Assembly (NCBI GenBank): GCA_026936335.1
Contig: JAPMXV010000075.1
Span: forward strand, 1 to 64,000
Length of the DNA: 64,000 nucleotides
From: Mantamonas sphyraenae STR306
Lineage: Eukaryota > Protista > CRuMs
Reading direction: 5' to 3'
Shown here: in pieces, positions 1-19,300 of the stretch
How the letters are laid out: each line of letters starts with the position of its first letter
How positions within the stretch are numbered: the first letter of the stretch is position 1
Made by a program: the position numbers and the translations under genes
Notes under the pieces: generated by a model
What the model saw: only the letters and a program-made list of their open reading frames with translations
What the model was told of the DNA's origin: nothing
The model's database searches: none

Positions 1-167
1 CCTAACCCTAACCCTAACCCTAACCCTAACCCTAACCCTAACCCTAACCCTAACCCTAACCCTAACCCTAACCCTAACCCTAACCCTAACCCTAACCCTA
101 ACCCTAACCCTAACCCTAACCCTAACCCTAACCCTAACCCTAACCCTAACCCTAACCCTAACCCTAA
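1..167. repeat. Telomeric repeat array (CCCTAA)n = TTAGGG type, left chromosome end
   Basis: About 28 perfect CCCTAA hexamers from base 1, C-rich strand on +, ending abruptly at 167. Confidence 0.98.
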
Positions 168-436
168 GGTGTGTCCATATCCCGTGTATGTGATGATTCC
201 GGTCTACGTCATGTGAGTTGTGCTTGTGTCTGCTGGCGGGGTGGCTGAGTTGGGAGTTGACATGGGGCAGTGGGCAATGGGTGGGAGTGGAAATGTCGCT
301 GGTGAGTGGCCTGTGTCTTGCAACGCCGCGCAGTCAACACTGCCCATCCGCCTTCAACCAAAGTATCACCAACAGCCACAACACCCTCCACAAGTCCAAC
401 ACAATCCACATACACTCCAGTACCACCACCACCACC

Positions 437-3400
437 ATGGACAAAGACTACTCAAGCACTCCGGAGCAACAACACACACCCAACATCTACCCAGCGTGCG
501 TTCTGCCTTCCACTCCGTTTTCTGACTGCCCGCTCCTCCCGCTTCCTTGCCTCCTCCATGCCTCCGTTGCGTCCCTGCACTCCTCCCCTGCATCTCCACT
601 ACCCCATCACCACCGTTGCTGCCTTCTCCGCTCTTCTCCGATCCCATCTCCCCTGTCACTGCCCTCCCCGTGGCCACTTTTCCGCGTCTGCCAATCTCCT
701 CCGTTTTTCCCTCCCTGCTCGTTCCAGCCTCCCTTCACCCCCGCTTCTGCTCTGACGGCGTCCGTTCCGCCTTCCGCTCACCGTTCCCACTCCGCCCTGC
801 CCCTCCGCGTCTCCCCACAGCTACGGGTATATGGTCCCTCCAATGGCTGCCCAGCCGTTTCCGAACGTGCTGCCCGTCTCTGGCGTACAAAACCCGTACC
901 AGCACCCACAACCACCCATCATCTGGGTCCCTGTCAACACCCACCCCCAGCAGCACCACGCATATGCTCATCAGGGCCACCCATACTACGCCTACCCTCC
1001 TCCGCCGCCTCCTCAGCCGCGACAAACCGCCCAGATGCGCTTCGCTCAGCCTCCGTCCCACCCTCCCCCTGCTCAACTCACCACAAACCACAATCGCGTC
1101 CCGAAACGCGTCAGCCCTGCCTTTGTGGGCATCACACGGACTACATCTACCACCACAACGTCCTCCTCCTCCCACCAGGCCACACGGCAGACCGGAGACA
1201 GCGACGACGACGACGCAGACCAAGACACACACACACATGACACTGGCGACGTGGAGGACCTGATGTTCCTGAACTTTGGCCACCGTGAACCACGGTCAGT
1301 CCCCAGCAACTCAGAGTGGATGGCCAGCTCATGGATGGAGGCGTCCGAAGAAGACGACGAGGCAAACGACGCAACCCAGCAGCACGTGGACGACGAGTTG
1401 GACACTCAGGGCCCACTCAGCTTTGCAGACACTGGTGATGCCATGGATGAGGAGTACATGCCGCAAGACGACAGCGACGACAACACAGACGACATGGAAC
1501 AGGAGGACACGGACGAGTGGCAGCCGAGGCGCACAAGTAGAGGCCGCACACGACGAGGATACCACGCCAGTCGACTCACTGGTTCACACTCGATGGAAGG
1601 CAGCGGGCAGCGCAGGCTCAGGGTCACGGCTGGCAGTGGCAAAGAGGCAGGAACGTCGAGCACACTGGCAAGGAGGGCCAAGAACGGGGACAACGGCGCA
1701 CTTAAGAACGCAGGGGTGTACAAGAGGAACAAGTTGCCAGATGTTGTTGCGCGCAAAGGGTGGTCGCAGAACTGGCGCAGTGAAGAGCGCAGCCACAGCA
1801 ACAAGAAGGAGCACACGGCACTGCTGAAGCACATGCACACTATTGCTAACGAGCATCCCATCGACGTCATCCCCGACCTCATGACCCTGCAGGCCCGTGT
1901 TTTGGTCTGCCATGGCACACTGAACACGCTGGTCCGACAGATTCAGCTCGCTCTGGGCAACATTCCCCTCTCCCAGGGCGACATGGCACTCTGCCTCACC
2001 CTTCTCGGCCGTGACATGGATCCACATGCGTGCAGCAATGCCATCCACGACGCCGGTCTGGCCATGGGTGTGACAGAGGCTGGGTTGAAGGTGTGCTGGC
2101 TGGAGGAACCACACGACCACGGCGACACCAACTACGCCCTCCTCCACCTGCTCATGGCAGAGATGGACACCCTTGGCAACAGGCCCCATCCCACCACCTG
2201 GAAGGAGCACAAGCAGACCCAGCTGTGGCTGCAGAAAGCACGACGCCCCGCTGACAACGACAGCGACCCACACTGGACACAATGCGACTACGACCACCAC
2301 CTCACCACCACCAACGTGGACAAGTGGCATCCTGTGTCTGTGCGCAGTGGCTGGAGCTCATCCTCAGACGAGCGTGGCAGCTGCACAGCGCGGGAGTTCC
2401 AGACGCTGCTGGCACACATGAAGGCACGCGCAGCCAAGAACCCTCGCCATCAGCACACACACGAGCACCAGGCACTGCGTGAGCTGATCAACAACGGCAG
2501 CATGAATTCCCTGGTGCGACACATCATCCTGGCACTGGGCAACGTTGGCGTGCCGCCTGTCGACCTGGCTTTCTTTGTCCGTCTTCTGAGGCCACACCTC
2601 ACCTACAAGCAGGTTCGCGTTGCCATCAAGGACAACCTCACCTGCGGTGCCACCTCCCTCTCCCTCAAGATCGCCTGGCTCGATACCCCCCAACCTAGCG
2701 ACGCCACACTGCACACCCTCCTGCACACCCTCATCGACCGCATCACACCCCACATCACCACCCGCCCCACCACCACTGACGCCGTCAATGCCCTCGACAT
2801 CCCCGAGCTTGTTCTCCCCGAGCCCACAGGGGAAGAGATGATGGCCACGGAGGATGGATTGCCAGATGGCGTTGTGCGCAGTGGCTGGACGCAGTGGCGC
2901 AAGAGCGAGCGCAGCCACAGCAACAAGAAGGAACACACGGCACTGCTGAACCACATGCACGCTCTGGCCAATGAGCATCCCGTCGACGACATCCCCGACC
3001 TCACGACCCTGCAGGCGCGTGTTGTGGTCTGCCATGGCACCGTGACCACGCTGGTCCGACAGATTCAGCTCTCTCTGGGCAACATCCCCCTCTCCCAGGG
3101 CGACATGGCCTTCTGTCTCACCCTCCTCGGCCGTGATATGGATCAACATGCGTGCAGCCTTGCCATCCGACACGCTTGTCTGGCCATGGGTGTGACAAAG
3201 GCTGGGTTGAAGGTGTGCTGGCTGGAGGAGCCACACGACCACGGCGACCCCAACTACGCCCTCCTCCACCTGCTCATGGCAGAGATGGACACTCTCGGCG
3301 ACAGACCCCATCCCACCACCTGGAAGGAGCACAAGCAGACCCAGCTGTGGCTGCAGGAAGCACGACGCCGTGCTGACAACGACAGCGACCCACACTGGAC

Positions 3401-4040
3401 GCAATGCGACTACGACCACCACCTTACCACCACCGAGGTGGACAAGTGGCTTCCAGAGTCTGTGCGCAGTGGCTGGAGCAGTGCCAATCACGGCGACGAG
3501 CGTGGCAGCTGCACGACGCGGGAGTTCCAGACGCTGCTGGCACACATGAAGGCACGCGCAGCCAAGTGCCCTCGCCATCGGCATGCAAATGAGCACCATG
3601 CACTGCGTGAGCTGATCAACAACGGCGATCTGCTGTCCCTGCTGCGACACATCATCCTGGCGCTGGGCAACGTTGGCGTGCCGCCTGTCGACCTGGCCTT
3701 CTTTGTTCGCCTCCTCAGGCCACGACTCACCTACAGGAAGGTGCAAGGTGCCATCAGCCACACCCTCACCCGCGGTGTCACCTCCCTCTCCCTCAAGATC
3801 GCCTGGCTTGACAACCCCAATCCCAACGACGCCACACTGCACACCCTGCTCCACACCCTCATCGACCGCATCACACCCCACACCACCACCCGTCCGACCA
3901 CCTCCGCACTCGTCAACGCCTACCCCATTCCCCCCTTCACCCTCCCCAAGCGCAAAGACCCTTCCTCCTCCTCCTCCTCCTCCTCCTCCTCATCATCATC
4001 ATCATCATCCTCCTCCTCCAAACGCCAACGCCTCGAATGA
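437..4040 (+). CDS. Subtelomeric protein with 4 copies (A-B-A-B) of an uncharacterised ~140-aa winged-helix-like domain and a C-terminal NLS-like motif
   Basis: ORF 831-4040. Predicted first exon 437-495 joins in frame through a GTGCGT...CCCCACAG intron (496-820; GC|C TAC GGG TAT ATG). Low-complexity P/Q and acidic N-terminus, two near-identical ~375-aa two-domain blocks, ends in poly-Ser KRQRLE. Confidence 0.8.
1735..3920 (+). repeat. Intragenic tandem duplication, period ~1122-1128 bp
   Basis: GAGCGCAGCCACAGCAACAAGAAGGA at ~1785 and ~2907; GACGAGCGTGGCAGCTGCAC at ~2367 and ~3495. Confidence 0.9.
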
Positions 4041-4512
4041 ACCCTTTAATCTAACCTCCGGGATCTCGACATCATGTTGCCTGCACACGCTTCCATCCAA
4101 ACGCACCCAATGCCAATCCAAACTCGTGCCAGCGCGCCACCGCACGGAATACAACATCCTGACAGCGTACGTCCCTGCAAATCCGCATACTATGTCCCCA
4201 CACCCGTTTATACCGTTTCAGCCGCCCCATTGGTTCATGCATACCAACACGTCAGCACCCACCGCCATTCTGCATTCACCCGTTTGTCCATGCAACTTGG
4301 TAACTGCATCCGTGCCACTCACACCCCGCATCTACCACCTGCAGCACAGGGATGCACAGTTCGCGTGTTGCACCTGCCGGTACACGAGCGAATCCCTCTG
4401 CAAGGTACGCCCCTCCAGCTCCTGGCGCATGTGTCCCAGGGACCCCATATTCCCCTCGCTGACACGTCAACCCGCACAACAATGCACGCACTCACCCTTC
4501 ACCAGTGCGTCC

Positions 4513-7500
4513 ATGGACCTAGAAACCCCTGTCAACACCTCTCGGCGTGCTGCACGTCGACGACCTACCTCATCTAGTGGTGGTACGGGTCTTTGGAAAC
4601 CAACCACCTCCGATTTTCCAGCTGACGGCGATGACACCCGCACAACACGCTCAGTTGCTTATGCCGACGAGCACCATGCCATCACAAACCTCGTGCACGC
4701 ACTGGCCGAGAGCAACCCCCTCCCAACTCTCTCAGAGGACCAGCTGCACCGCGCAAAGCTTGCGTCATCGCCCACGGGCATGCACAACACCATCAAACGG
4801 GTCCTGCTGGCCCTGGGCAATCCGCCCCTCCCTGCCTTCCACATTTGCCTGTTCGCCTGCCTCGTGACACCTGACTACGATCCACAGGCAGTCAACACAG
4901 CGCTCGGCTCCTTCGCTCACAGCCTTCACTACGGCGTCTCAGACTCCGGTCTGCGTCTGATGTGGCTGAAAGAAAACCACACTGACGACGACGAAGAAGA
5001 GGACCCCGTTGCCTATTCGTACATCCTTCACCTGTTGGACAGCAGCTTGCAGGACCTCTCCGAGCAGCCACAGGAAATCGACGACATCAAACGCCTCCTC
5101 TCAACCCGTAGCAACTGGGCCCCAGCCATCTCCACCGAGGGCTCGTGGCCTCGCTACTCCGGACGCAACCACTGTGATCAAGCAGAGTACGTCGAACTCG
5201 TCGCATACGTGCACGACCTGGCTGACAAACATCGGGGCACCGACATCGACGACGCTGTACCGGCCAATCTGTCCGTTCGCTCGCTTTTGCGCCACGTCTT
5301 TGTAGCTGTCGGCAACGTGCCTCTCCCTCCGTTCGAGGCTGCCCTGTTTGCGTGCATCATCCAACCCGACGTCGAACCCCAGCAGTGCCGCAACCGACTG
5401 AGTGACATGCTCGTCAGGGGCGTCACCGACACAGATCTCAAGGTTGGATACCTGTCGTGGGAGCACGTGTCATCTACGCCTTTCATTCCAGCCATCCTGA
5501 AGGAGTTGGACGACCGCCTGACCTCGTCGACCTCGCCGCCGACGACGCTGGAGGAAATCAGTGACATGGTCAGCTCCACATCCGTCACGCCAGACAATCC
5601 AAGCTCTGATATGGTCATAGAGGACACAGTCGGCGTCGCTGCGGCTCCGTGGCTCCTCTCGCCACCACCGGAGTCTGGATGGCCCAAGAAGGGGCCTCGC
5701 GAACACTGCAATCCGGACGAGTACCGCAGTCTATGCGCGCACATTCAGCGTATTGCTTCAGCACAGCAACCCACCTACGCCGACTACGAGGCGCTTGCCG
5801 ACGATATCCCGAACCATGGCGCCCTTGGACTGATGCGCCTGGTGTTTGTCGCGCTCAACTTCACGCCCCTTCCTCCCTTGGAGCTCTCTTTATTTGTGCG
5901 CATGCTCAATCCGGCATACACGACGCAGCGTATCCGCAAGTCAGCCGTCATCGGCGTCCACGGAGTTTTCAAAAACCATCTCAAGCTCGCCTGGGCTGTG
6001 CCAAAGGACGAAGACACATTCTACCCGGCCATTGTCCATCGCATCGCACACTGCCTCTCCATGATCGAAGATCAAATCGTCACCTTTGAAGATGCAGACA
6101 GTGCAGTGTTTGGGCATCTCACCGACTCGGCCGCAGAAATTCACGCTGAAATATCCACGTCTCCGAGTACCATGCCGACATGGCCTCCGAAGCACACACC
6201 GGCCTTTTCGAGGAGCCTGCGCAAGGCTGCCAACGAGTCTGAACTGCAGGCGCTCACAGCCCACATCCGTCGCATCACCATCGACCACCCAGTCACCTGG
6301 AATGAGCTTCGATTCCTTTTCCACATGTTCGACGGCAGCACGGTGCACGACGTTGTCGCTGCCATCTTTGTCTCCCTGGAAAACGTGCCGCTGCCGCACG
6401 GCACCCTGGAGCACTTTGTACAGATTCTGGGCCCGGAGTTCAACCCGACCACTTTTCGCAATTTCATCACTGGCAACCTCATACAACATGCCACCGACGA
6501 CGGCCTCCTGCTCTACACCTACCCTGCCGCCGCCGACGAAGCAGAGTTTTCACCAGGCATCGCCCACACGCTCCTCCGGCGCCTTTCGGTTGCCCCGTCG
6601 TCCTCTGCGGAAACGACCGATGACAGGGACGACTCGGTGGTACGGGTCGACGACAGTGACGACGGCATGGACATCCAAGACAGCCCAACGGCCTCCACAG
6701 CCATCTGGCCGCCCACCGTGTTCGACATGGGCATCTACTCTCCAAGGAAAATGCGAAGCAAGGTCACCCCGGGCGAGTTTGCTGCCCTCAAATCATACAT
6801 CCGCGGCATCACCCTCGCCCACCCTGTGTCACAAGCGCAGCTCGACGAGCTCCCTGACATGGCTGAAGGCAGTATGGTCGAAGAAATCGTTGCCGCCATC
6901 TACGTGGCGCTGGACAACACGCCGCTCCCTCTCTTTGAGCTTGCCCGCTTTGTCCACATCCTCGACCCCACCGTCCGACCCACTGATATGTCCATCATCT
7001 CCAAGCAAGCGCTGAAACCAGTGCGCACACTCGACAACCTGCGCCTGTTTACGATGCCGGATGCACACATGCACGCTGACGGTATCCCTGCGATCGCACA
7101 CTACCTGCTGGCGCATTTAGAGCGTGTGGATAGACCGTGCGCGTCACTGGACTCTGCCAACGCCCACACAACTGCCTCGGCTACGTCCAGCTCAACCTCC
7201 TCCTCATCCTCCTCATCCTCCTCCTCAACTACCATTACTACCACTACCACCACCTCCACCTCCTCCTCCTCTTCCTCAGTCCCTCCAACGTGGCCTCCCG
7301 AGCACCAGCCATTCTCGAAGAGGACGGGTATCCTAACCTTGCGCAAGGCTGCCAACGACGCAGAACTGCAGGCAATCACAGCCCACATCCGCCGCATCAC
7401 CATTGCCCACCCGGTGACCCAAGAGCAACTGGACGACCTGCCCGATTTGATCGACGGTTGCACGTTGCGAATCGTGGTTGCCGCCATCTTTGTCGCCCTG

Positions 7501-10500
7501 GACAACATCCCGCTCTCCAGCCGAGAACTGCAGCAGTTTGTGCACGTGCTTGCCCCCATCTTCAAACCGAAAACAGTGCAGCGCTTTGCGAGTGACTATT
7601 TGCGGGGCACCGCCACCGACGACGGCCTCCTGCTCTACTCGTTCCCGACCGCCAAACAGGAAGCAGACTTCTACCCGAGCATCGCGCACACACTCCTCAA
7701 GCACCTCTCACGACACGTGCCCACTGTAAAAGACGAGATGGATGCCCAGCGATCCGCGCCCAACCCACCCGCGTGGCCACCCGCGCTCACCGACCTGTTC
7801 AACCGCGCTTCAAACGCACGGACCGCCGTTGCCGACGCTGAGTTTGCCGCACTCACAGACCACATCCGCCGCATCACCCTCGCCCATCCTGTGTCACAAG
7901 CGCAGCTCGACGAGCTCCCGGGCATGGTCGATGGGACCATCGTCCACGACATTGTTGCCGCCATCTACGTGGCCCTGGACTACACGCCGCTCCCTCTCTT
8001 TGAGCTTGCCCGCTTTGTCCACATGCTCGACCCCACCGTCCGACCCACGGATCTGTCCAACTTTTCCAAACAACATCTGCAGCGGGTGAGCACGATCGAC
8101 AACCTGCGTCTGTACACGATGCCGGACGCCCACAAGCACGCAGACTTCATTCCAGCGATTGCGCACCACCTGCTGGCACGGCTGGCGCACGTGGATGGAC
8201 CGTGCACCAAGCTGGCCTCTGCCGCCGCCACTCCGTCCACACAGCCGATCACAAACACACCAGGCGCATCTGCCTACTGGCCTCCAAACCACTCGCCCCT
8301 CGATGCCCAAGGTGATTCCGTGTCCCTGCGCTCCGCCGTCACTCCGGACGAGCTCAAGTCCCTGTTGGACCACGTGCGTCACGTGGCCAAAGCACACCCT
8401 GTTTCAGCAGCCGATTTCAGCGAGCTCCCCGACCTGGTTTACGGCAGTGATTTGCAAGAGGTCGCTTTGGCCATCAGTCTGGCCCTTGGCAACGTTCCTC
8501 TGCCGTTGATTGAGCACATCCGCTTTGTTTGCATGATCTGTCCTCAAACGAACTCCCAGTACATGTCCTACTTCATCAAGCACGAGTTTGACGCCTTTGT
8601 CACCGACGACAACTTGGTGCTGTACCATCCGCCCAACGACGCGGCGACAGAGGTGCATTACACGCCTGCCATTGCCCATCACATCCTGGCACATCTGCAG
8701 CACGTGGATGGACCCGCCACCGTGGTGGCCCGCCTCTCGCAGCTGCAGTTTCCTACCCCAGCCCAGCCCGACCTCCGCGCAGCGCCTTCATCATCATCAC
8801 CATCCTCCTCCTCCTCCTCCTCCTCCTCCTCCTCCTCCACCACCACCACCACCTCCTCTTCACATCCCCTGACTTGGCCACCGACCCTACATCCAAACAA
8901 CCCAAACACTGCGGTGAGAAACCCCCGCATGTCGGCCAACACTGCTGAGTTTGCCGCACTCACAGACCACATCCGACGCATCACCCTCGCCCATCCCGTG
9001 TCCCAAGAGCAGCTCGACGAGCTCCCGGGCATGGTCGACGGCACGATGGTCTACGACATTGTTGCCGCCATCTACGTGGCCCTGGACAACACGCCGCTCC
9101 CTCTCTTTGAGCTCGCCCGTTTTGTCCACATGCTCGACCCCACCGTCCCGCCCGCTGATCTGTCCAACTTTTCCAAACAGTACCTGAAACGTGTGACCTC
9201 CACCGACGGCCTGCGCCTGTACACGATGCCCGGCGCCCACAGGCACGTTGCTTTCACCCCTGCAATCGCACACCACCTGCTGGCGCATCTGGAGCACGTG
9301 GATGGTCCGTGCACCACTCTGGCATCCGCCAGCACCCACGACGTTGTCACACCCACCGCCACCATCACCACCCCCGTCTGGTCTCCCACGATCACAGAGA
9401 CAACCGATACCCTGAACGATATCAGGCACGCACGAGTGCTCCTCACCGCCGAGGAGCGAGAGCAGGTCGCCGCCCTCATCGACTCGATGGCCAATGCCAA
9501 TGTGCCCACCCACGCAGACTACCTGAACTACAACGACCTCTGCGCAAACACAGACCATGCTGTGATCCACCAGAGCGTCTTCAACGCTGTCAACAACACT
9601 CCCCTGCCGGATCGCTACCACTTGTTCTTCTGCTTGACCATCAACTCCACCATCCGTCCGAAGCAGCTGGTCAACCACATGAAGACGCACTGCCGCTTTG
9701 GATGGACCGACTCCGGCATTGGCGTCGCTATGCCTCGAACCTCTAGCCGCGACCACTTCAACCCGGTTGTCGCCTATCGCCTTCGAGACGTGCTCGCCTC
9801 TACAACGCCGCCCGAATCCCGCGCAAGGGAGACCCTGCAGGCGCTCGACTTGCATCGGCTGCCGCCACATCCTGCGCCTAGCACACACCCTGTGCGCGAG
9901 GACGATACCACCCACCTGGCGGTGTGGACTCCCGTGATGGCATCCACGAAACCCACCGCGCCACGCTTCACCCTCACCAGCCTCGAACGCACCCAAGTCA
10001 GAAACTACATTGACCGCGTCGCCGCCACCATGCGCAACCCCACGGACGAGGACTACGAGCTGTACGCATCCATCAAGATCGCACGTGTTGCGTTCGACAC
10101 CATTTTCGGCTCGCTGGGCAACCTGCCGACCCTGGTCGTCATCCTTTTTGCCTCGTTCTTCCTCCAAAGAGCGCCAACTTCCCTCAAGAACTTGATGGAG
10201 ACCTATGTCAACCTCTCCTACACTGCGAGTGCCCTCCAGGTGGCCTCTCTGAAAAGGCCCAAACCAGAATGCTTCAACCCAGTCGTTGTTCAGCGCATCA
10301 AAGACTGCCTCGACGTCCTCTCCGAATGGCCTCGGGGCTTGTCCGACGTGGAAAGGGTGATGAACGAGCACCGTGCCATCTTGCCCACGCCGCCCCAACC
10401 GAACCAACGAGGATCCGCTCAACAGCTCTGGTCGCCCACAATTCACAAGCAGGGATGGCGTGGGGCCGAGCGCTACTGTACTCCGAATGAGTACAAAGTT

Positions 10501-13314
10501 GTTGTGGCCACCATCGTGCGCAAGGCCAACCTGGCCCGCTCGCGAACCTCCTCCACAAACGACGTGGAGGCAATCGACGACCTGCTTCACAATGGTTCGG
10601 CATCCGAGGTCGTCCAGCACCTTTCCAACGCCCTGGACTGCATGCCTCTTCCGTACGTACAGTACGCGTACTTTGTGCACCTTGTGTCGCCACACCACGC
10701 CATGTCCAGTGTGCAGGAGGCCATCTCCAACGACCTCGTCCACGGCACGGATTCCACTGGGCTTCGCTTGGCCTGGGTCACTCCTGAGCATTCCATGGGC
10801 CCTCCGAGTCCACACCTGCTCCATGTGCTCGCCAGCAAGTTGCAGGGGGCGACCCGAAACCCCCTCACTGAGCAAGATCTCCGTGCTATTTTCAACGCAT
10901 TCTCCTCCCCCTCCTCATCATCATCCTCATCCTCATCCTCATCCTCATCCTCCACATACCCTTCTCGCTCCTCCTCGAGCCCCGAGCCCCCCGCCTCCCC
11001 ACCCACGCGCCGCTCCTCCCACGCCACCGGTGGTGTGTGGGAGGTTCAAAAACTGCGTGACTCGTGCAACGACCACGAATACGCCGTTCTGATCGAGCAC
11101 ATGCGTGCGACGGCACACAAACACAACGCAGAGCGCCATGCGAGCCATCACGCCAAACAACTGCGCACACCTACCCTACCCATGCTCCTGCGACATATCC
11201 TTCTGGCGCTGGACGGCCAGGCGATCCCTTCCATCGAGCTGATGCACTTTGCCCTTCTCCTGCGGCCCCACTGTGACCTTAAGGAGGCCAACGAGACAAT
11301 TCCCACCGTCTTTATCGTCGTGCCCACCGTCCACGGTCTCCGCCTCGTCCGAGAACCTTTTCCGGACAGGTATCCCATGCCCATGTATGGCCTCCTGCAT
11401 CTCCTCATCGACGCTTTGGGTCGCAACCAGCGGTACGTCCGCCCGACCTCCTTCGACGCCCTCGTTGCGCTGCAGGCACAACAGAACGAGCGCGGAATGA
11501 CACGAGACGCTGGACGGTGGTCACCCAACGTCACCAGCCATGAGTGGTCCCTCGTGTCCAAGGAGCGTGACTGCTGCTCGCTGGAAGAGTACGAATCTCT
11601 CGTGCGCTACATCCGCCGTGTCACAGAGCTGCATCCCATGGACACCATCACTGGCCCTGAGCGAAGGGCAGCCGAGCACCTCGTGCACACCGGCACCATG
11701 GCAGACATCATGCGCCAGATCTCCATGGTCCTCGAGTGCACGCCCATCCCTCCCGTCGAGATGTGTTTCTTCACCTGGCTCTTTCGCACCAGCGTCGACA
11801 CCCACGTCAGCAAGCCTGCCTGCCAGGTTCTCTTCTGCACAGGGGTCACTGACGACGACTTGCGTGTCGTCTGGCTCGAGTCCCCGTCCCGCTTCGGACG
11901 CCCCCTGTACCACTTGGCACACTCTCTACTGTACATGATCACCCAGATGCGCCGTCACCCTGTCAGCTACGAAGACCTCACCCTGCTCAAGATCGATTTT
12001 GCGCGATCACAACCCGCGCTCTCCTCACCGCCTTCCAATCACGACGCATCCTCCTCCTCCTCCACGACTACAACCACCGCCACAAAGATGCCCTCTCCCC
12101 GGCGCAAGAAGAGGCCATTCAAGCTGGACAAGAGCCTTCTCCTCTACGACGAGTGCCGCTATCCCAAGTTTATTCCCCCGGAGTATGTCCACACCCTCAT
12201 GGTGGACACTGCAGAAGCAATCTTGCACAAGTACCCGTCCAAACATGCCACAAACGCCGATCGCCAACGCCTTGACGCATTGATCAATGGCAAAGTGGCC
12301 AATTTGGCAGACGCCATTGCCCTTCTCCTGGGTGGCCAAGACGTGTGCATTCCTGTGATCAACATCTGCCACTTTGTGTCCATCCTTCGTCTCCGCAAGG
12401 GCAAAAAGAAGGTAGTTGTCGGTCCCCGCGGCACCATGAGCAACTTTCAGCTGTGCACCACCAAGCCCTATGGCAGGAAACGTGCTTCAGTCCCGCTTGC
12501 GGCAAGCGAGGGTCGCCTGGACATGGACAAAACCGAACAGCAAACTCCGTTGTACCTGCTCGCGCAGGAGATTGTGGACGTTGCCAAGATGTTCCCTGGG
12601 CCGCCCAGCGCGGTTGCGGAGATGCCGGTGAAGCCGCTTCGTCGGCCGCAGCAAGTGCAGGTGCCTCACTGGCTTGAGTTTGTCGCAGACTTGGAAAAGC
12701 AACCCAAGAAGCAGTACTGGTCCAACGACACACGGTTTGAGTGGACCAGCATCGAGTACCGCTCCTTCATGGCATTCGCGGTGGAGGTTGCTTCCGCCCA
12801 CCCTCTACGCAACCTCCACCACGAGCACAAGGACGTTCTGGACATGTTTGACTGTTCCGAGAACGTCAATACCCTCGTGACCAACCTGTGCCTGTTGTTC
12901 ACAGGCACCCCGGTGCCAGCCATCGCCATTTGCACTCTGGCTCGTCTCCTCGTGCCCGAACACTCCTGTGATGTGTTGATGCGTGCCATCGCACGCACTC
13001 TGTCCACCCAAATGACTTTGGGCAAACTCAGGGTCTGTGTCCCCTACTCGCTGCATATGCATCCATCGCCCCTCTACACAGTCCTGCACATTGCCCTCTC
13101 CCGCACCAAGTACCTGTCGCTCTTCCCCAGGAACAGCCACTTTGTCGACTCCATTCGATCCGTGGCCATTACGTCCCCCGAGCAGGTCATTGCAGTGCTG
13201 ACCAAGAAGAACTCAGGCACAAAACGTGCCCGTGACGATGATGACGATGATGACGACGACGACGACGACGACGACGAATTCTCCAACAGCAAGCGACAAC
13301 GCGTTTCCCATTAG
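4513..13314 (+). CDS. Giant (~2900 aa) subtelomeric protein with ~16 copies of the same uncharacterised domain, poly-Ser/Thr linkers, acidic + KRQR C-terminus
   Basis: Uninterrupted ORF 3673-13314; likely start is ATG 4513 (MDLETP), although upstream exons are possible. Recurrent pattern W-x-P...R...E(Y/F)xxLxxHI...HP...IxxALxNxPLPxxExxxFVxxLxP...T-xx-(G/N)L(R/K)L...(P/Y)xIxHxLL. Ends in DDDD...SKRQRVSH. Confidence 0.85.
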   Translation: MDLETPVNTSRRAARRRPTSSSGGTGLWKPTTSDFPADGDDTRTTRSVAYADEHHAITNLVHALAESNPLPTLSEDQLHRAKLASSPTGMHNTIKRVLLALGNPPLPAFHICLFACLVTPDYDPQAVNTALGSFAHSLHYGVSDSGLRLMWLKENHTDDDEEEDPVAYSYILHLLDSSLQDLSEQPQEIDDIKRLLSTRSNWAPAISTEGSWPRYSGRNHCDQAEYVELVAYVHDLADKHRGTDIDDAVPANLSVRSLLRHVFVAVGNVPLPPFEAALFACIIQPDVEPQQCRNRLSDMLVRGVTDTDLKVGYLSWEHVSSTPFIPAILKELDDRLTSSTSPPTTLEEISDMVSSTSVTPDNPSSDMVIEDTVGVAAAPWLLSPPPESGWPKKGPREHCNPDEYRSLCAHIQRIASAQQPTYADYEALADDIPNHGALGLMRLVFVALNFTPLPPLELSLFVRMLNPAYTTQRIRKSAVIGVHGVFKNHLKLAWAVPKDEDTFYPAIVHRIAHCLSMIEDQIVTFEDADSAVFGHLTDSAAEIHAEISTSPSTMPTWPPKHTPAFSRSLRKAANESELQALTAHIRRITIDHPVTWNELRFLFHMFDGSTVHDVVAAIFVSLENVPLPHGTLEHFVQILGPEFNPTTFRNFITGNLIQHATDDGLLLYTYPAAADEAEFSPGIAHTLLRRLSVAPSSSAETTDDRDDSVVRVDDSDDGMDIQDSPTASTAIWPPTVFDMGIYSPRKMRSKVTPGEFAALKSYIRGITLAHPVSQAQLDELPDMAEGSMVEEIVAAIYVALDNTPLPLFELARFVHILDPTVRPTDMSIISKQALKPVRTLDNLRLFTMPDAHMHADGIPAIAHYLLAHLERVDRPCASLDSANAHTTASATSSSTSSSSSSSSSSTTITTTTTTSTSSSSSSVPPTWPPEHQPFSKRTGILTLRKAANDAELQAITAHIRRITIAHPVTQEQLDDLPDLIDGCTLRIVVAAIFVALDNIPLSSRELQQFVHVLAPIFKPKTVQRFASDYLRGTATDDGLLLYSFPTAKQEADFYPSIAHTLLKHLSRHVPTVKDEMDAQRSAPNPPAWPPALTDLFNRASNARTAVADAEFAALTDHIRRITLAHPVSQAQLDELPGMVDGTIVHDIVAAIYVALDYTPLPLFELARFVHMLDPTVRPTDLSNFSKQHLQRVSTIDNLRLYTMPDAHKHADFIPAIAHHLLARLAHVDGPCTKLASAAATPSTQPITNTPGASAYWPPNHSPLDAQGDSVSLRSAVTPDELKSLLDHVRHVAKAHPVSAADFSELPDLVYGSDLQEVALAISLALGNVPLPLIEHIRFVCMICPQTNSQYMSYFIKHEFDAFVTDDNLVLYHPPNDAATEVHYTPAIAHHILAHLQHVDGPATVVARLSQLQFPTPAQPDLRAAPSSSSPSSSSSSSSSSSSTTTTTSSSHPLTWPPTLHPNNPNTAVRNPRMSANTAEFAALTDHIRRITLAHPVSQEQLDELPGMVDGTMVYDIVAAIYVALDNTPLPLFELARFVHMLDPTVPPADLSNFSKQYLKRVTSTDGLRLYTMPGAHRHVAFTPAIAHHLLAHLEHVDGPCTTLASASTHDVVTPTATITTPVWSPTITETTDTLNDIRHARVLLTAEEREQVAALIDSMANANVPTHADYLNYNDLCANTDHAVIHQSVFNAVNNTPLPDRYHLFFCLTINSTIRPKQLVNHMKTHCRFGWTDSGIGVAMPRTSSRDHFNPVVAYRLRDVLASTTPPESRARETLQALDLHRLPPHPAPSTHPVREDDTTHLAVWTPVMASTKPTAPRFTLTSLERTQVRNYIDRVAATMRNPTDEDYELYASIKIARVAFDTIFGSLGNLPTLVVILFASFFLQRAPTSLKNLMETYVNLSYTASALQVASLKRPKPECFNPVVVQRIKDCLDVLSEWPRGLSDVERVMNEHRAILPTPPQPNQRGSAQQLWSPTIHKQGWRGAERYCTPNEYKVVVATIVRKANLARSRTSSTNDVEAIDDLLHNGSASEVVQHLSNALDCMPLPYVQYAYFVHLVSPHHAMSSVQEAISNDLVHGTDSTGLRLAWVTPEHSMGPPSPHLLHVLASKLQGATRNPLTEQDLRAIFNAFSSPSSSSSSSSSSSSSSTYPSRSSSSPEPPASPPTRRSSHATGGVWEVQKLRDSCNDHEYAVLIEHMRATAHKHNAERHASHHAKQLRTPTLPMLLRHILLALDGQAIPSIELMHFALLLRPHCDLKEANETIPTVFIVVPTVHGLRLVREPFPDRYPMPMYGLLHLLIDALGRNQRYVRPTSFDALVALQAQQNERGMTRDAGRWSPNVTSHEWSLVSKERDCCSLEEYESLVRYIRRVTELHPMDTITGPERRAAEHLVHTGTMADIMRQISMVLECTPIPPVEMCFFTWLFRTSVDTHVSKPACQVLFCTGVTDDDLRVVWLESPSRFGRPLYHLAHSLLYMITQMRRHPVSYEDLTLLKIDFARSQPALSSPPSNHDASSSSSTTTTTATKMPSPRRKKRPFKLDKSLLLYDECRYPKFIPPEYVHTLMVDTAEAILHKYPSKHATNADRQRLDALINGKVANLADAIALLLGGQDVCIPVINICHFVSILRLRKGKKKVVVGPRGTMSNFQLCTTKPYGRKRASVPLAASEGRLDMDKTEQQTPLYLLAQEIVDVAKMFPGPPSAVAEMPVKPLRRPQQVQVPHWLEFVADLEKQPKKQYWSNDTRFEWTSIEYRSFMAFAVEVASAHPLRNLHHEHKDVLDMFDCSENVNTLVTNLCLLFTGTPVPAIAICTLARLLVPEHSCDVLMRAIARTLSTQMTLGKLRVCVPYSLHMHPSPLYTVLHIALSRTKYLSLFPRNSHFVDSIRSVAITSPEQVIAVLTKKNSGTKRARDDDDDDDDDDDDDDEFSNSKRQRVSH

Positions 13315-13384: not shown

Positions 13385-16300
13385 CTATGCTTTGTTCCCA
13401 CGCAAAGACCGCAGCTCAATCTCCGCGCCCTCTCCACCCTCGCCCACACCCACTCCCAACGCGTCCAGAAACACACGTCGTCCAGGCTCGTCTTCATGGC
13501 TCACCTTGAGCCAACGTGCCACCCGTTTGCCCCAACGGCGATCCACTGCCTCCAAGGCCTCCACGACCACTTCCCGCGGACCCTGGATTTTCTCCAATCC
13601 CTGCGCCGCCACCCACTCTCTGCACGCACGCATCTCCTCGCACCGCATGGCGATGACGCGTTGCCGCACAGACTTGAGCCGTGTCGCACGCACCATCTTC
13701 TCCAGTGTTTCCATCAGGCGCTCAAACTCGTCGCGTGTGCGTTCGTCCAGCGAAGACTCTTCAAACCGTGCACGCACGGCCCCCACCAGCTCAAACATCA
13801 CAAAGACCACGCAGGTAATCAGCACCATCACCAACACAATCAACGCAGTCCACTCCCACGCGTCCCCTGCGCCAGTATCGCTCCCGGTGACAAACACCAC
13901 ACCCAACATGAGCACAAGGACACTCAATGCAAGCAGAGTGGCCTCGAGTTGGTTTGCAGCTGCGCTTTGGTACGGATCAAAGCGCAGCTGAAGGATGGCT
14001 GCACCCATGAGCACCACCATCCCCAGCAACGCCTGCAACGCAGGGCGCGACGTGGCAAACAGTTGCACAGCGACCACCATGCCCTTGCGCAGCATCACCA
14101 CCGATTCGTACCAATAGAATTTGGTCGCAAACTTGCTGAAACTCGTGGAGAACTTCTCCTGGAACGCCGCGCGCTCTCGCGCAGCCAAACTGCGAGCACT
14201 CATCAACACAGCAAGGATCGCTAGTGGGATGCCCAGCACGTACAGGACGGCAAACACAGAGGCTGCTGGCATAAGACGTGCCTGGAGGCCCGTGTCCTGC
14301 CAGCATCGTTCGTCCGGAAGCTTGTCCAGCACAAACAGACCCGGGGCAATCTCGGTGCAGTCAAACACGGACAGCACCGTTGCGCACAGCGGAATGTACA
14401 ACAGAGTGACAGTGAGCACCATTTCGTTGACCACATAGCGTAGCACTTGCTGGTCGACCACTTCCGCCTCCACAAACAGTCGAGAGAGCTGGTGCCTGGC
14501 CATCGACAGGGCGAACGACACTTCGGTGCTCCCGGACGGCTCGGAACAAAACGCAGGGTGGGCCTGACGGAATCGCTCGCCATAGATGCGCACAAGGTTG
14601 GCATGGAGGAACTGCAGGATGGTGCGCACAACGATGCCACAGAAAACCAGCAACGGAAGTGCCATGACCACGTAAAACACATCCTCGTTGGTCCAACCAC
14701 GGCACTCGGGAGCCACGGTCTGCAGGTCAAAGTTGGCCAGGGTCAGCCAACGCAGCGTGGACTCGACACGCTGGGGCCAGGCGAGTCTGTACGACGCAAA
14801 CGTCGCCAGCACCTGCAGGTGGTTGATGACCAGAGTGGTCACCTTGACACGGGCCACCCCTCGTGCCTGTCGTCGCACCCACTGCAGATAGGCCACAAAC
14901 AGAGCCAACAGCAGCAGCACCGAGCCTGCGTCTGCCCCTGCCTCCGGACACGCCTGACACGCCTCGCCCAGCTTGTACCATCCTTTCTTGCACACGCCAC
15001 ACAGACGTCCAGTGAACCCTTCGGCACAGGACGACTTTGCGCCTCCAAGACACGCTGCACGCGTGGCGCAGCGCACAAACGTCAGATCTTCGGTTTGGAA
15101 GAATCCCGCTTGGGCGTGCGGCGGTTCGCCGAGGCCAGGACACACGGCCCCCTCGGGACATGCAGTGCATGCTTGGCCAGGTTGGCCATAGAATTGGACA
15201 CGGCACACACAGTCGAGGGTGGACCGTGCTGTGCCTATGGACGGGGGCACAAACGAGTTGAGAGGACACAGGATCTGTTGGCTGAGCACCTCCAGGGTGG
15301 ACGCAGCAGATGTGTTGTACCCCTGACCTCCATCAAGGCTCAGAGACACTTGGTAGTCGCCACGTGCAAGGGTGGACGGTGTTTCCACCTGTACTTCAGA
15401 GTCGGTGACGGATTGCGCCGCCAGGACGACCGATCCCAGACGCACGACGACTGAGCCCGTGTCGACAAACCCCGACCCCAACACACGCAGGGTGACACGC
15501 ACCCCAGGGGCCACCTGGGTGGGTTCCACACGAAGAACCGTGGGGAAGGACACCAGTCTCACAGACATCCCCGTGGCCACATACTGTTGCCCATTGTTGG
15601 CAAAGGTCAATTGCAACGCAGAGGCGGTGCCAGTGTAGCTTGGCACGCGTACACGCACGCCTCCGCCCACGGGTGTCACTCCGACGTTCGCCGTCCAGCC
15701 CAGACCATCCAACACCCGCATGCTCATTTCTGTTGCAGGCACGTTGGCATAGCTGCCCACAAGCACTACCTCCGTTCCTCCTGTCCTGTACACCGCCGCA
15801 GGCGAGATTCCTGTCCACGCCGGTGTGGCGTAGCGAGTGAACACGCCGGCGAGCACAAACGACGCGCCGTCGTTGCTGCTCACCTGCACCTGAACCTGCC
15901 CCACCTCTGTGGGTGTGGGCGCTGCAAACGGCGTCGTCACACGGACCTCTGTCCCCTGCGTGCTGCTCGCGTTGGCCAGCAAGCTTGGTTGCTGGCCCAT
16001 TCTCACACGGAAGATGCCTTGACCCAGCAAGCCGCTGCCCACAATCCTCACCTGTGTGCCGCCTGTAACGGGTCCACTCGTTGGCTGCACTTGGTCCACA
16101 CGTGGCGCCACCACATCCATGATGTGGCTGCCGTATACTTGTTGGCCATTCAGACGCACCCCCACACGCACCTGAGACGCGGACAGACTCGGTGCTTCGC
16201 ATACCACCGTGGCACCTGCGTCTTCCACCCATGCGGGCACCGCGGTGGTGTCAAACATCACTTCCAGCTGATCGGTGGCCACAAACCCGTCGCCACGCAC

Positions 16301-19300
16301 GCGCACCTGCAACCTGCCACCGCTGCTTCGGTTTGTCGCCGATGGAAGCAAAGCAGGCAATGTTGTGGGCCACACAGAATCCACTCGCGGCTCCTGACTC
16401 ACATGCAGCCACGCTGCCTCGGTAGCGCCCGCGTCTTTGCCTCCGTTGCACGTCACGGTCACGCTGTGGTTGCCAACGGGCAGCACGGGCGTTTCGCATT
16501 GCACCTGCGTGGCACTGATGAACGTGGCTGCCACAGTGGCCAACTGGCCAAACTGACACTGCAGTTGGTTGCCAGTGTTGCGAAAAGCACGCCCCATCAC
16601 AGTCACCTGCGTGCCCCCAGTGATGGGTGCCCAGCGCGGCATGGACTTGTCCAAGCCAAACACAAACAACGACTGCCATTCACTCCACTGTTGCAAGTTC
16701 ATCGACACAGACACCGTCCACTCGCCCGTCAAGTTCACCGCCTTTGGCAGCGCAATCTCTGCACGAACAGCCGACACTCGCCGCCCCTGGAGAGGACCCA
16801 TCTCCACGCCGCCGCCACCACCACCGTTACCGTGGCGCAGTCGCATGTACACGGGCTCGCCTGTGTCATCAAATGCACGCAGTGCCTCAGGCTGAAGCAC
16901 GAGTGTGGCATTGTGATTTTCGGGAAACACGCCGTCCAGCACTTGCGGCTTTCCCGGGTCCGAGTACAGTGTCACTTGCAGTGCATTGGGATTGGCATTG
17001 TACGTGGAGTGACCAGCGGGTTGCACAAGCACAGTGATGGCCGAGACCTGTCCCAAAGGCGGGTTGAACACGGATTGTGTCTGCCGCACCAGCCGCACCT
17101 GCAGCACATATTCTTCCCCATCCAACACGTACTCAGCACTCCACTTGTTGAAACTATTGGACATGGAGATGGTGGGATTGGCGAGGTTGGCCAGCCAGCG
17201 CCCTCGCAGCGTCAACAACGTCGCCTTGGCTGGATCCTGCTCCAACACAGCCAATTTGGGCTCCAAACTGTCAAATGAGCTGTTGTAGCGATACATGGTG
17301 CCCGCCAGCTCCCAGTTTTGCCCATTCACGGCAATCCAAACGTTCTGAAGCCGTGCCCTGTCCACCGCGGGCAGGATGCACCACACTCCGCCGTCGTTTT
17401 GGTAAATGCCAGTCACCTCCTGCTCGTCGTACCTACAGCGCAGCTGACTTTGATCGTATGCCACAATGCCAGTGCCGTAGTACATGAGAAAACCTGCCAA
17501 CGTGCCGATGCTCGTTGCGTTTCGTGTCTGTCTGCTCCGATCCCAATGCACACGGTATGCCTGCACCACGGGCGCCTGCAACGGATAGCTGCCGTTCACG
17601 TCCATGTGCAGCGAGTATGTCCCCACGTGTGGCAACGGCGGTGTCACACATGTGGCACGGTGTGTTGTGCCGTTGACACGCGTGCATGCCAAGGTGTAGT
17701 CACCCACCGTGGAATTGCGCAACACAGCCTGCATGCCTGGCTGCCACGCACTCTCCACCGTCAGCACCGTGTTTCCAGTCACGTGCACGTACGTGGTCGA
17801 CGTGATGGCCGTGCGCGTAAAATTGCACTCGGTTGCACCCTCATGCAAGGCATACAAGGTCGCTGGACACGCTGTGCATGTCTGTGCCCCAAACATGTCA
17901 CTGAATGTGCCCACTGCACACAGTTTGCAATGCGGACCTGCTCCGTATCCGCTGGCATCCCACGTCGAATGCATCGATTGGCTGCCTGCGGTGCATGCGT
18001 CACGCACCACCGCCCCAAACATAGCCTGTTGGCCCGCCGCCGGCGTATTGGATCCACTCACCAACACTCCGTCCGTGCTTCCAAACACCATGGCCGTGTC
18101 GTCCGCGAGAACCGCCACGCAGGTGGATCGATCCCCACCCGAGCTGCCAAAACCACGCGCCCACATCACCGCCCCTGCTCCAGACACATTCACCTGTGCC
18201 ACAAACACATGGGAGCTGCCCTGTGCGCTCACGCCTTCAAAGGTCGACGCCGCCAATCCCGTCACCAACACACGCCCGCTTTCGCGTGTGTCCTCCGCCA
18301 CATCCAATGCCACTTCGTTTCCACTGCCTCCCATCGTTACTTGGCCCATCCATGTCCCGCTTCCAGCCGCAAACATCGCCACCCACATCTCCTGACCCTT
18401 GCCAGCGACGTATGCTTCGCCAACGGCCACCACCGTTTCCCCCACCAAGCTCATGCGATGAAACGCATCTTGGTTGTGCTTTTGCGACACGTACGACCAC
18501 ACGCGTGCTCCTGTGCTCCCATCCACAGCCATGACCCACGCATCTCGCGTCGACACCCCTGCATCGCTTCCTCCCACCGACGTCCCGTGCAGATTGCCCA
18601 CACTCAGCTCCCCGACGAGATACACACGACTGCAATCCCCGCTGGCGTGTGAATCCAACACAATCGTGTCGTTCGCATGGCTCACTCGCCACATCTCCAC
18701 TCCGTTGGCTGCAAATCTCCAAAGCTGCTGCGGCCGCGACTGCCCATTGTCCGTTTTGGCAGCCACAAAATAGTCCCCATTCGCACACATGGCCAGCGTT
18801 GCATGTGTGTCAAAGGTAGTCGAATCCACCAGCCGGATCCTGTGCACGCCAACAATGTCAGATCCTGCGTGGATTGTCATAACACAAATGCGCTCCAAAG
18901 CCAAACCTACCAGGCCGGTTCGCCCGTCTGTGCATCCAACTTTGCCACAAACGCGTCGTATCCTGCCGGTGTGGCACCCAGGAACGCTCCGTTGGTGTGT
19001 CCTGCCATGAAAAGCGAGCCGTTGTGGAAGCGTAACGCAGAACACACTTGAGAAAACGGCGCCTCAAACACGCGTCGACGCACAACTGAGCCATCCCGCT
19101 TCATCCACGTCAGTTGGATGTCGTACGAAGCCGGGTCGTTGGGTGTGCTTGTTTTGACACTGGCAAACACGACTGTGGAGGCGTCCACCGGAACCGAGCG
19201 CTGGTTTTCCACTGTCCCGGTCAGTGTTGGTCCATCCTGCTTGACCCACAATGCCCCCACATGTGCACACAGTAGCCATTGTACCAACAGCAGCAACACC

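Follow-up and report, generated by a model that had tools for sequence, protein, structure and literature searches.

The window analysed here is the first 64 kb (64,000 nucleotides) of contig 75 in the 25.06-Mb, 78-contig genome assembly of the deep-branching protist Mantamonas sphyraenae; in the published assembly, telomeres were reported at both ends of 59 contigs and at one end of 14 (PMC10492846). The window opens on a chromosome end, and behind the telomere repeats lie two plus-strand genes, designated gene A and gene B, that are built from tandem copies of one module of about 150 residues (Table 1). The genes beside them in the window are ordinary eukaryotic ones (Tudor-SN, FAN1, cyclin and NOP9 by Pfam). 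Gene B is faced by a convergent receptor-like ORF on the minus strand (13385-19045; 1886 aa), which has IPT-like repeats, several membrane segments and a Cys-rich region and ends about 70 bp from the stop codon of gene B.

Table 1 Features of the telomere-proximal part of the window. Codons of gene A are counted from the ATG at 831.
Feature	Position	Strand	Basis or remark
Telomeric (CCCTAA)n array, chromosome end	1..167	.	27.8 perfect copies
End-specific spacer between telomere repeats and conserved unit	168..190	.	Unalignable between ends (22 ends)
Gene A conserved leader, presumed promoter and 5' UTR	190..436	+	Comparison of ends
Gene A exon 1, 19 codons + 2 nt	437..495	+	Frame check; conserved between ends; RNA-like joints
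Gene A intron, phase-2, GT-AG	496..820	+	Depth drop and joints 493/495 -> 821/827, run X3 only
Gene A exon 2	821..4040	+	ORF list, repeat profile, frame check
A repeat 1, type 1	1749..2195	+	Repeat profile, dimer model
Helix 3 of A repeat 1, presumed recognition helix	2022..2051	+	Dimer model; hypervariable codons 399, 403, 406, 407
A repeat 2, type 2	2319..2774	+	Repeat profile, dimer model
Helix 3 of A repeat 2	2604..2636	+	Dimer model; hypervariable codons 593, 596, 597, 601
A repeat 3, type 1, 84% identical to repeat 1	2874..3317	+	Helix 3 at 3144-3173
A repeat 4, type 2, 81% identical to repeat 2	3447..3902	+	Helix 3 at 3732-3764
Gene B exon 1	4352..4404	+	Start codon inferred from frame; joint in run X3
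Gene B intron, phase-2, GT-AG	4405..4505	+	Joint 4402 -> 4504 (GT..AG, cut +2), run X3 only
Gene B exon 2	4506..13314	+	16 diverged modules, acidic tract, terminal KRQR
B repeats 1-3	4588..6087	+	Repeat profile
B repeats 4-9, 34-75% identical	6169..9318	+	Repeat profile, pairwise identity
B repeat B7, the folded model	7762-8229	+	AlphaFold2
B repeats 10-16; B11, B15 and B16 divergent	9367..13113	+	Repeat profile

The single-exon ORF of gene A runs from 831 to 4040, and its spliced product of 1092 aa begins with a low-complexity N-terminus (Pro/Gln-rich, acidic and basic), continues with four modules and ends in a Ser tract and KRQR. The modules form two dimers, each of a type 1 followed by a type 2 module, the two types being 29-32% alike. 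The linker within the dimer (2196-2318) is conserved, with a predicted helix and a His/Cys/Asp-rich stretch; the latter lies in a low-confidence part of the model and might bind metal. Gene B, whose ORF extends from stop to stop over 3673-13314, has a spliced product of 2953 aa, and the two genes share a short first exon, a phase-2 intron and the KRQR end. The terminal KRQR had been pointed out for both proteins in an earlier sequence-only reading of the locus, and it is found in nearly all copies of gene A that were read. Neither a signal peptide nor a convincing transmembrane segment was detected, as the same reading had stated, the best 19-residue hydropathy being 1.9 and within repeat helices. 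Its description of poly-Ser/Thr linkers applies to 5 of the 15 linkers of gene B and fails for gene A, where no such tract lies between repeats and the linker carries a predicted helix.

Both introns were predicted from the sequence before reads were mapped. Four public runs were then aligned to positions 250-5600, one of which (X3) is RNA-like, its RNA status being deduced from its coverage. In X3 the depth is zero between the two genes and drops strongly inside the intron of gene A, and the splice joints, those of gene A lying on paralogue contigs, are absent from the three other runs. Genes A and B are therefore both transcribed and spliced as far as this run supports it, in line with the earlier expectation that the ORFs are expressed. 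The start of gene A at 437 holds as well, since the intron links this exon in frame and the joint is seen in the RNA-like run. Many distinct paralogous contigs of X3 fall on gene A, and thus many of its copies are transcribed. The joined exons served frame and hydropathy checks alone, and every search used single-exon references. In the published annotation repeats were masked ahead of gene prediction (PMC10492846); the masking presumably covered these genes, which were probably missed for that reason.

A profile built from 17 anchored repeats recovers exactly 4 modules in A and 16 in B, with no others in the rest of the window; the earlier reading had likewise given 20. With close paralogues removed, 17 repeats had leave-one-out scores of 50-123 bits and the divergent B11, B15 and B16 scores of 18-55 bits, and shuffled repeats reached at most 11 bits (500 shuffles per repeat). 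The consensus W...R...E...LxNxPL...TxxxLxL...H is as noted before.

The family had been called unrecognised, and the database searches bear this out. Pfam searches with both proteins and all 20 repeats gave weak unrelated matches only; no effector domain and no target was found for either protein. Among protein sequences, nothing was returned from 5.8 billion entries for residues 300-660 of A (targets of 0.55-1.75 times its length), no homolog was found by the profile in 1.84 billion representative proteins, and metagenome contigs held no relatives. Foldseek searches of the PDB and of viral structures and searches of the ESM Atlas by shape and by features gave nothing significant, and no paper on gene A was found in the literature. 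Two candidates were rejected: the lone PDB sequence-profile match, a short helix of a cytochrome construct, and the single profile match among the representative proteins, a tandem PDZ protein whose score was summed over seven weak stretches (hhalign probability 1.6%). CRuMs are barely sampled, so the lack of homologs marks a restricted family, not necessarily a species-specific one.

The suggestion that the module resembles a winged helix was pursued on a single repeat and on a dimer. AlphaFold2 with an alignment of 20 diverse repeats folded B7 with a pLDDT of 91 and a pTM of 0.87, as an N-terminal arm, a long helix, helix 0, three helices, a beta-hairpin and a C-terminal helix (core elements H61-71, H79-89, H95-105 and E107-119). 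The confidence of this model is probably owed to the diverged B repeats, which occur in this window alone. The A dimer model contains two such domains (pLDDT 85, pTM 0.69), joined by a linker predicted to be part helical and part disordered. In wide structural alignments the top-50 matches of both independent models were all winged helices, with weak Z scores of 4-6; among them are F-93 (Z 6.0, rmsd 3.9, 81 residues), Hop2 (Z 5.8, rmsd 1.7 A, 59 residues), Fur (Z 5.7, rmsd 2.2 A, 66 residues) and FOXM1 (Z 5.4, rmsd 2.9, 78 residues), besides RNA polymerase delta, histone H5 and domains of cullin, MCM and RPC62. The weak Foldseek matches were likewise winged helices, none of them significant. 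At the level of fold, the predicted models thus support an extended winged helix: a three-helix bundle with a helix-turn-helix, followed by a beta-hairpin wing, to which extra helices are added. None of the top-50 matches spans the whole 150-aa domain, and Z scores of 6.0 or less would reflect a common arrangement and not kinship with one family.

The shared arrangement of three helices and a beta-hairpin recalls HARE-HTH/RNA polymerase delta, forkhead, H15, Fur, Hop2, SSV1 F-93 and LOTUS domains, on which the predicted core superimposes at 1.7-3 A over 59-80 residues, but none of these matches in sequence, and with the added N-terminal arm, long helix, helix 0 and C-terminal helix the module is a 150-aa unit that no match covers in full. 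A HARE-HTH domain is defined by an extra helix inserted in the helix-turn-helix (PMC11037411); the module has no inserted helix, helices 2 and 3 being joined by a turn of 5 residues, and no HARE-HTH match in Pfam at E up to 1. Forkhead domains gave no Pfam or PDB sequence match and 6-7% identity in the structural match, and helix 3 is not conserved. For linker histone H15 there is no Pfam match, and the modules are neutral to acidic, with no basic tails. LOTUS/OST-HTH, which may be remotely linked, has no Pfam match and is not among the structural matches listed.

What the sequence-only reading overlooked is that gene A caps essentially every chromosome end, and its notion of a two-gene family gives way to a gene with well over 150 copies. 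Genome-wide, the repeat profile returned 735 candidates, and the 150 of them that were scored lay nearly all 2-4 kb from a contig end and always pointed away from the telomere. Searches with the 5' part of the unit gave 177 candidates and with the telomere-side leader 132, the number of published telomeric ends (2 x 59 + 14); these are counts of candidates and not exact totals, the copy numbers given here being based on search candidates and about 50 loci. The unit was present in 22 of 22 left ends read, chosen from contigs with matches, and stood directly behind the telomere in 20. Gene A is therefore part of a unit of about 4 kb, roughly 89% identical between copies across that length, that abuts the telomere at essentially every chromosome end, with about 177 copies when tandem ones are counted. 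The donor context of its intron is kept in 22 of 22 ends. Of 109 distinct frames counted by hand, 85 stay open over 1040 codons or more, the shorter ones comprising complete one-dimer versions and frameshifts that are real or due to assembly. The number of dimers varies from one upwards.

The two borders of the unit differ. On the telomere side, each end has a private spacer of 20-100 bp, often AT/GT-rich, with a heterozygosity of 0.64 vs about 0.1 downstream (22 ends; window 168-190, L037-L056), and inner tandem copies share a junction, 8 of the 9 listed starting at 343. On the inner side the unit has no set limit: it extends between a few bases and more than 900 nt beyond the stop and shows no poly(A). 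A border that is fixed towards the telomere and ragged inwards is consistent with copying from an internal invasion point out to the chromosome end, by break-induced replication or gene conversion. Retroposition of the unit is unlikely because the only RVT_1 match in the genome, a lower bound, is telomerase (TERT) and because the intron is retained.

The copies at different ends allow selection on the module surface to be read codon by codon, for which the analysis took in about 50 dimer units drawn from some 27 loci. The ratio of per-codon pN to global pS has a median of 0.26 and exceeds 3 at 17 codons; helix 2, the wing and the C-terminal helix of type 2 are nearly frozen (0.08-0.32). Hypervariable codons carry 9-12 amino acids and comprise 313/314 (arm) and 399, 403 and 406 (helix 3) in type 1, where 365 at the start of helix 1 carries five, and 510/511, 559, 596, 597 and 601 in type 2. 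Placed on the dimer model, they would occupy the arm, the first turn of helix 1 and positions i, i+3/4 and i+7/8 of helix 3, alternating in helical register with buried positions that are conserved. Positions 309, 317, 318 and parts of 649-661, which chiefly separate first from later dimers, were not counted as hypervariable.

This pattern is present in first and later dimers taken separately, and homologous columns vary in types 1 and 2, which are about 30% alike (Spearman 0.39, p 1e-6; permutation p <1e-5). Model M2a was preferred to M1a with 2dL of 176 and 293 and omega of about 6 on 5% of codons. This test alone was not trusted, because recombination yields false positives; in neutral simulations with recombination (n=14) false 2dL values of 9-111 arose, all of which are exceeded by the real ones. 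At least 10 such codons exceed a heterozygosity of 0.5 at the first as well as the second position (0.44 expected from four-fold sites). First and second positions of variable codons stand at 0.57-0.61 vs 0.135 at four-fold sites, and heterozygosity in the intron and leader is near 0.1. Heterozygosity is elevated at the third positions of these codons too (mean 0.40-0.44 vs 0.135), in part because amino-acid changes force change there. The module scaffold is under purifying selection while one surface, formed by the outer face of helix 3, the start of helix 1 and the N-terminal arm, diversifies; positive selection is confined to these codons of the tandem modules, the presumed contact positions.

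Taken together as a code, the 12 variable residues of a dimer differ in 38 of 39 units, and the six residues of a single module are distinct in 37 of 40 type 1 and 46 of 47 type 2 modules. The residues are mostly S, Q, N, H, L, K and R, with P, I and V occurring too and aromatic residues below 1%. Most variable sites are unlinked, and are thus shuffled between copies. Many modules are neutral or acidic (12 K+R vs 17 D+E in type 1, 9 vs 24 in B1).

Gene B has a different history. No second genomic copy was found in a DNA-level search, and no B-like paralogue ranks above the A repeats in the genome profile search. Its repeats are mostly 11-31% alike, with the exception of the block B4-B9, a younger internal expansion; within the trio B5/B7/B9 the largest differences lie in the arm, the start of helix 1, the wing and helix 3. 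Gene B is a single-copy and much older array of the module, with 16 fixed and different surfaces.

Winged-helix transcription factors insert helix 3 into the major groove, and the fold is also known to bind Z-DNA, RNA and proteins (PMC11037411). We favour, at a probability of roughly 55%, the reading that gene A encodes a repertoire of nucleic-acid readers engaged in genetic conflict, because a constant scaffold is combined with a diversifying face of helix 3, a basic terminal motif and an acidic, Pro/Gln-rich N-terminus. The unit would have spread to essentially all ends and be kept in constant exchange by ectopic recombination. Its protein, probably nuclear, would present two to many extended winged-helix modules of 150 aa. 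Recombination would reshuffle the diversified surface between copies, such that a cell may express hundreds of variant binding surfaces. By inserting helix 3 into the major groove, as is usual for winged helices, these would recognise DNA (or RNA) sequence; the N-terminus may recruit partners for silencing, transcription or degradation. The opponents could be invading or selfish DNA, or rival copies. Nuclear location, a nucleic-acid ligand and a role in conflict are what we infer; recognition of foreign DNA by A, an idea of the sequence-only reading, is compatible with the diversifying selection. The repertoire that the data suggest would comprise about 150-180 sequence readers, a kind for which there is no earlier description. 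A natural, programmable winged-helix code with a reader gene at every end, diversified by selection and shuffled by recombination on the telomere side, serving as an anticipatory repertoire against foreign DNA or as a private barcode of each end, is a more tentative proposition.

The nature of the variable residues bears on the best of the alternatives, that the surface binds proteins, either in recognising viral or symbiont proteins or in homotypic self-recognition as in poison-antidote meiotic drivers. Variable protein-binding sites are typically rich in aromatic residues, which are nearly absent here, and the variation falls on helix 3 and the start of helix 1, the canonical DNA-facing parts; the NLS-like KRQR that ends both proteins also speaks against it. 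Winged helices do often make protein contacts, as the cullin, MCM and RPC62 domains among the matches recall, many modules lack a net positive charge, and L, P, I and V are present at variable sites, so that we regard protein binding as improbable but worth keeping in view.

Somewhat less probable is an end-identity system, in which the reader of each end binds with its private code to that same end, for instance to the spacer or adjacent unique DNA, for homolog pairing, end protection or cis-preferential copying. At least one copy of gene A at essentially every end, a private code in nearly every copy and a private spacer beside each telomere would suit it. Meiosis genes are present, with two Spo11-like matches, and a meiotic HORMAD has been reported in Mantamonas (PMC10907721), as have about 66 small chromosome pairs (PMC10492846), which need pairing. 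Proteins, however, act in trans, and X3 was probably obtained from ordinary culture. Some copies are tandem, broken or interstitial, the spacers might consist of telomere repeats that have decayed, and free shuffling of code sites between ends would destroy lock-and-key matches.

A selfish telomeric element of the HeT-A or Y' kind, whose protein promotes its own spread and which would diversify through rivalry among copies or in evading silencing by the host, is again a little less credible. In HeT-A the 5' end faces the telomere, and so does that of the A unit, which occurs in head-to-tail tandem copies with the common junction at 343, has an inner boundary lying 0 to more than 900 nt past the stop and makes up about 3% of the genome. 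Against this, Pfam finds no RT, nuclease, helicase or transposase in the unit, the genome holds no reverse transcriptase match other than telomerase, the intron is kept, there is neither poly(A) nor a fixed 3' end, and the fixed telomeric and ragged inner sides suit break-induced copying better than retroposition. Finally, that A is a fixed-target binder of telomere repeats (TTAGGG) or of general chromatin, with its variation due to relaxed constraint or local hypermutation, accords with the location beside the telomere, with histone H5/H1 and Hop2 among the structural neighbours and with a single-copy gene B that could be structural, but is largely refuted for gene A and the least probable of all, for the variation is several-fold above the neutral level and skips buried positions of the same helix, and TTAGGG binding, raised by the sequence-only reading, is disfavoured because no part of the protein varies more than its presumed recognition helix and because telomerase and POT1 genes are present in the genome.

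The A and B modules fit no family tested; in its workings, gene A is most like a repertoire of zinc-finger arrays, and in its placement like TLO or Y' genes. PRDM9 has tandem modules in variable number with nonsynonymous hypervariation at three contact codons (PMC3890296). With PRDM9 and KRAB zinc-finger arrays gene A shares tandem modules, a homogenised scaffold and few hypervariable codons; unlike them, its module is a 150-aa winged-helix derivative with no C2H2 pattern and no SET or KRAB domain, and unlike PRDM9 its diversity lies among about 177 end paralogues and not among alleles of one locus, its binding being putative. The TLO (Med2) genes of Candida albicans, 14 spliced copies of a Mediator subunit at most ends, undergo subtelomeric recombination (PMC4335505); gene A is likewise lineage-specific, spliced and expanded to chromosome ends, and TLO differs in having no DNA-binding array and no hypervariable helix. 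The four zinc-finger genes HIM-8/ZIM of Caenorhabditis elegans are paralogous, chromosome-specific DNA readers (PMC11605055), to which the A paralogues compare through putative differing specificities tied to chromosomes, the relevance being hypothetical; HIM-8/ZIM are, unlike A, not encoded on each end. The RHS genes of trypanosomes form a multicopy subtelomeric family with broken members (PMC7563717).

The A unit resembles RHS, Y' and HeT-A in being multicopy and telomere-abutting, single or in tandem, with some copies broken, and differs from RHS, Y', TLH and HeT-A by the lack of an NTPase, helicase, Gag or RT and by the retained intron. Yeast Y', fungal telomere-linked helicases and Drosophila HeT-A are multicopy coding units, subtelomeric or telomere-abutting, single or in tandem. 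Telomeric retroelements such as HeT-A/TART, Athena and terminons are set apart by RT/Gag and by a poly(A) or fixed 3' end, none of which was found here; surface antigens such as var and VSG are set apart by a signal peptide and a membrane anchor, and the hydropathy scan revealed neither. Two architectures of hypervariable modular DNA reader are known, zinc-finger arrays and TAL repeats; a winged-helix reader repertoire would, if true, be the third. The subtelomere would then be diversifying a nuclear reader and not a surface antigen. Its natural variants, several hundred on a single constant scaffold, would make a recognition code directly testable by SELEX.

Several individual loci carry features of their own. 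At the left end of C3, the TERT gene lies directly inside two tandem A copies and is convergent with them (C3:3700-10200, L032), the inner copy being complete with a single dimer and 681 aa long. In an interior cluster of the longest contig (C29:74800-104600; L022, L034-L036), long A arrays in convergent orientation, with frames of 1902, 2172 and 3224 codons, flank 9 kb that hold a multicopper-oxidase/ABC-like gene and an MFS-like transporter; no telomere repeats occur in the flanks read, and the cluster could be a fused minichromosome or a misassembly. The left ends of C74 and C8 (L040, L056) have in common an insert of about 700 bp with 22-bp tandem repeats, between the telomere and the A leader, that matches no Rfam family and no tRNA. 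Two tRNA genes, tRNA-Thr(AGT) (L017:1124-1195) and tRNA-Leu(AAG) (L018:887-968), are found no more than about 200 bp from where an A unit ends, at two chromosome ends, and on C13 the unit is directly followed by an ORF (L031:4059-5399) that we take, by eye, to be flavohemoglobin-like.
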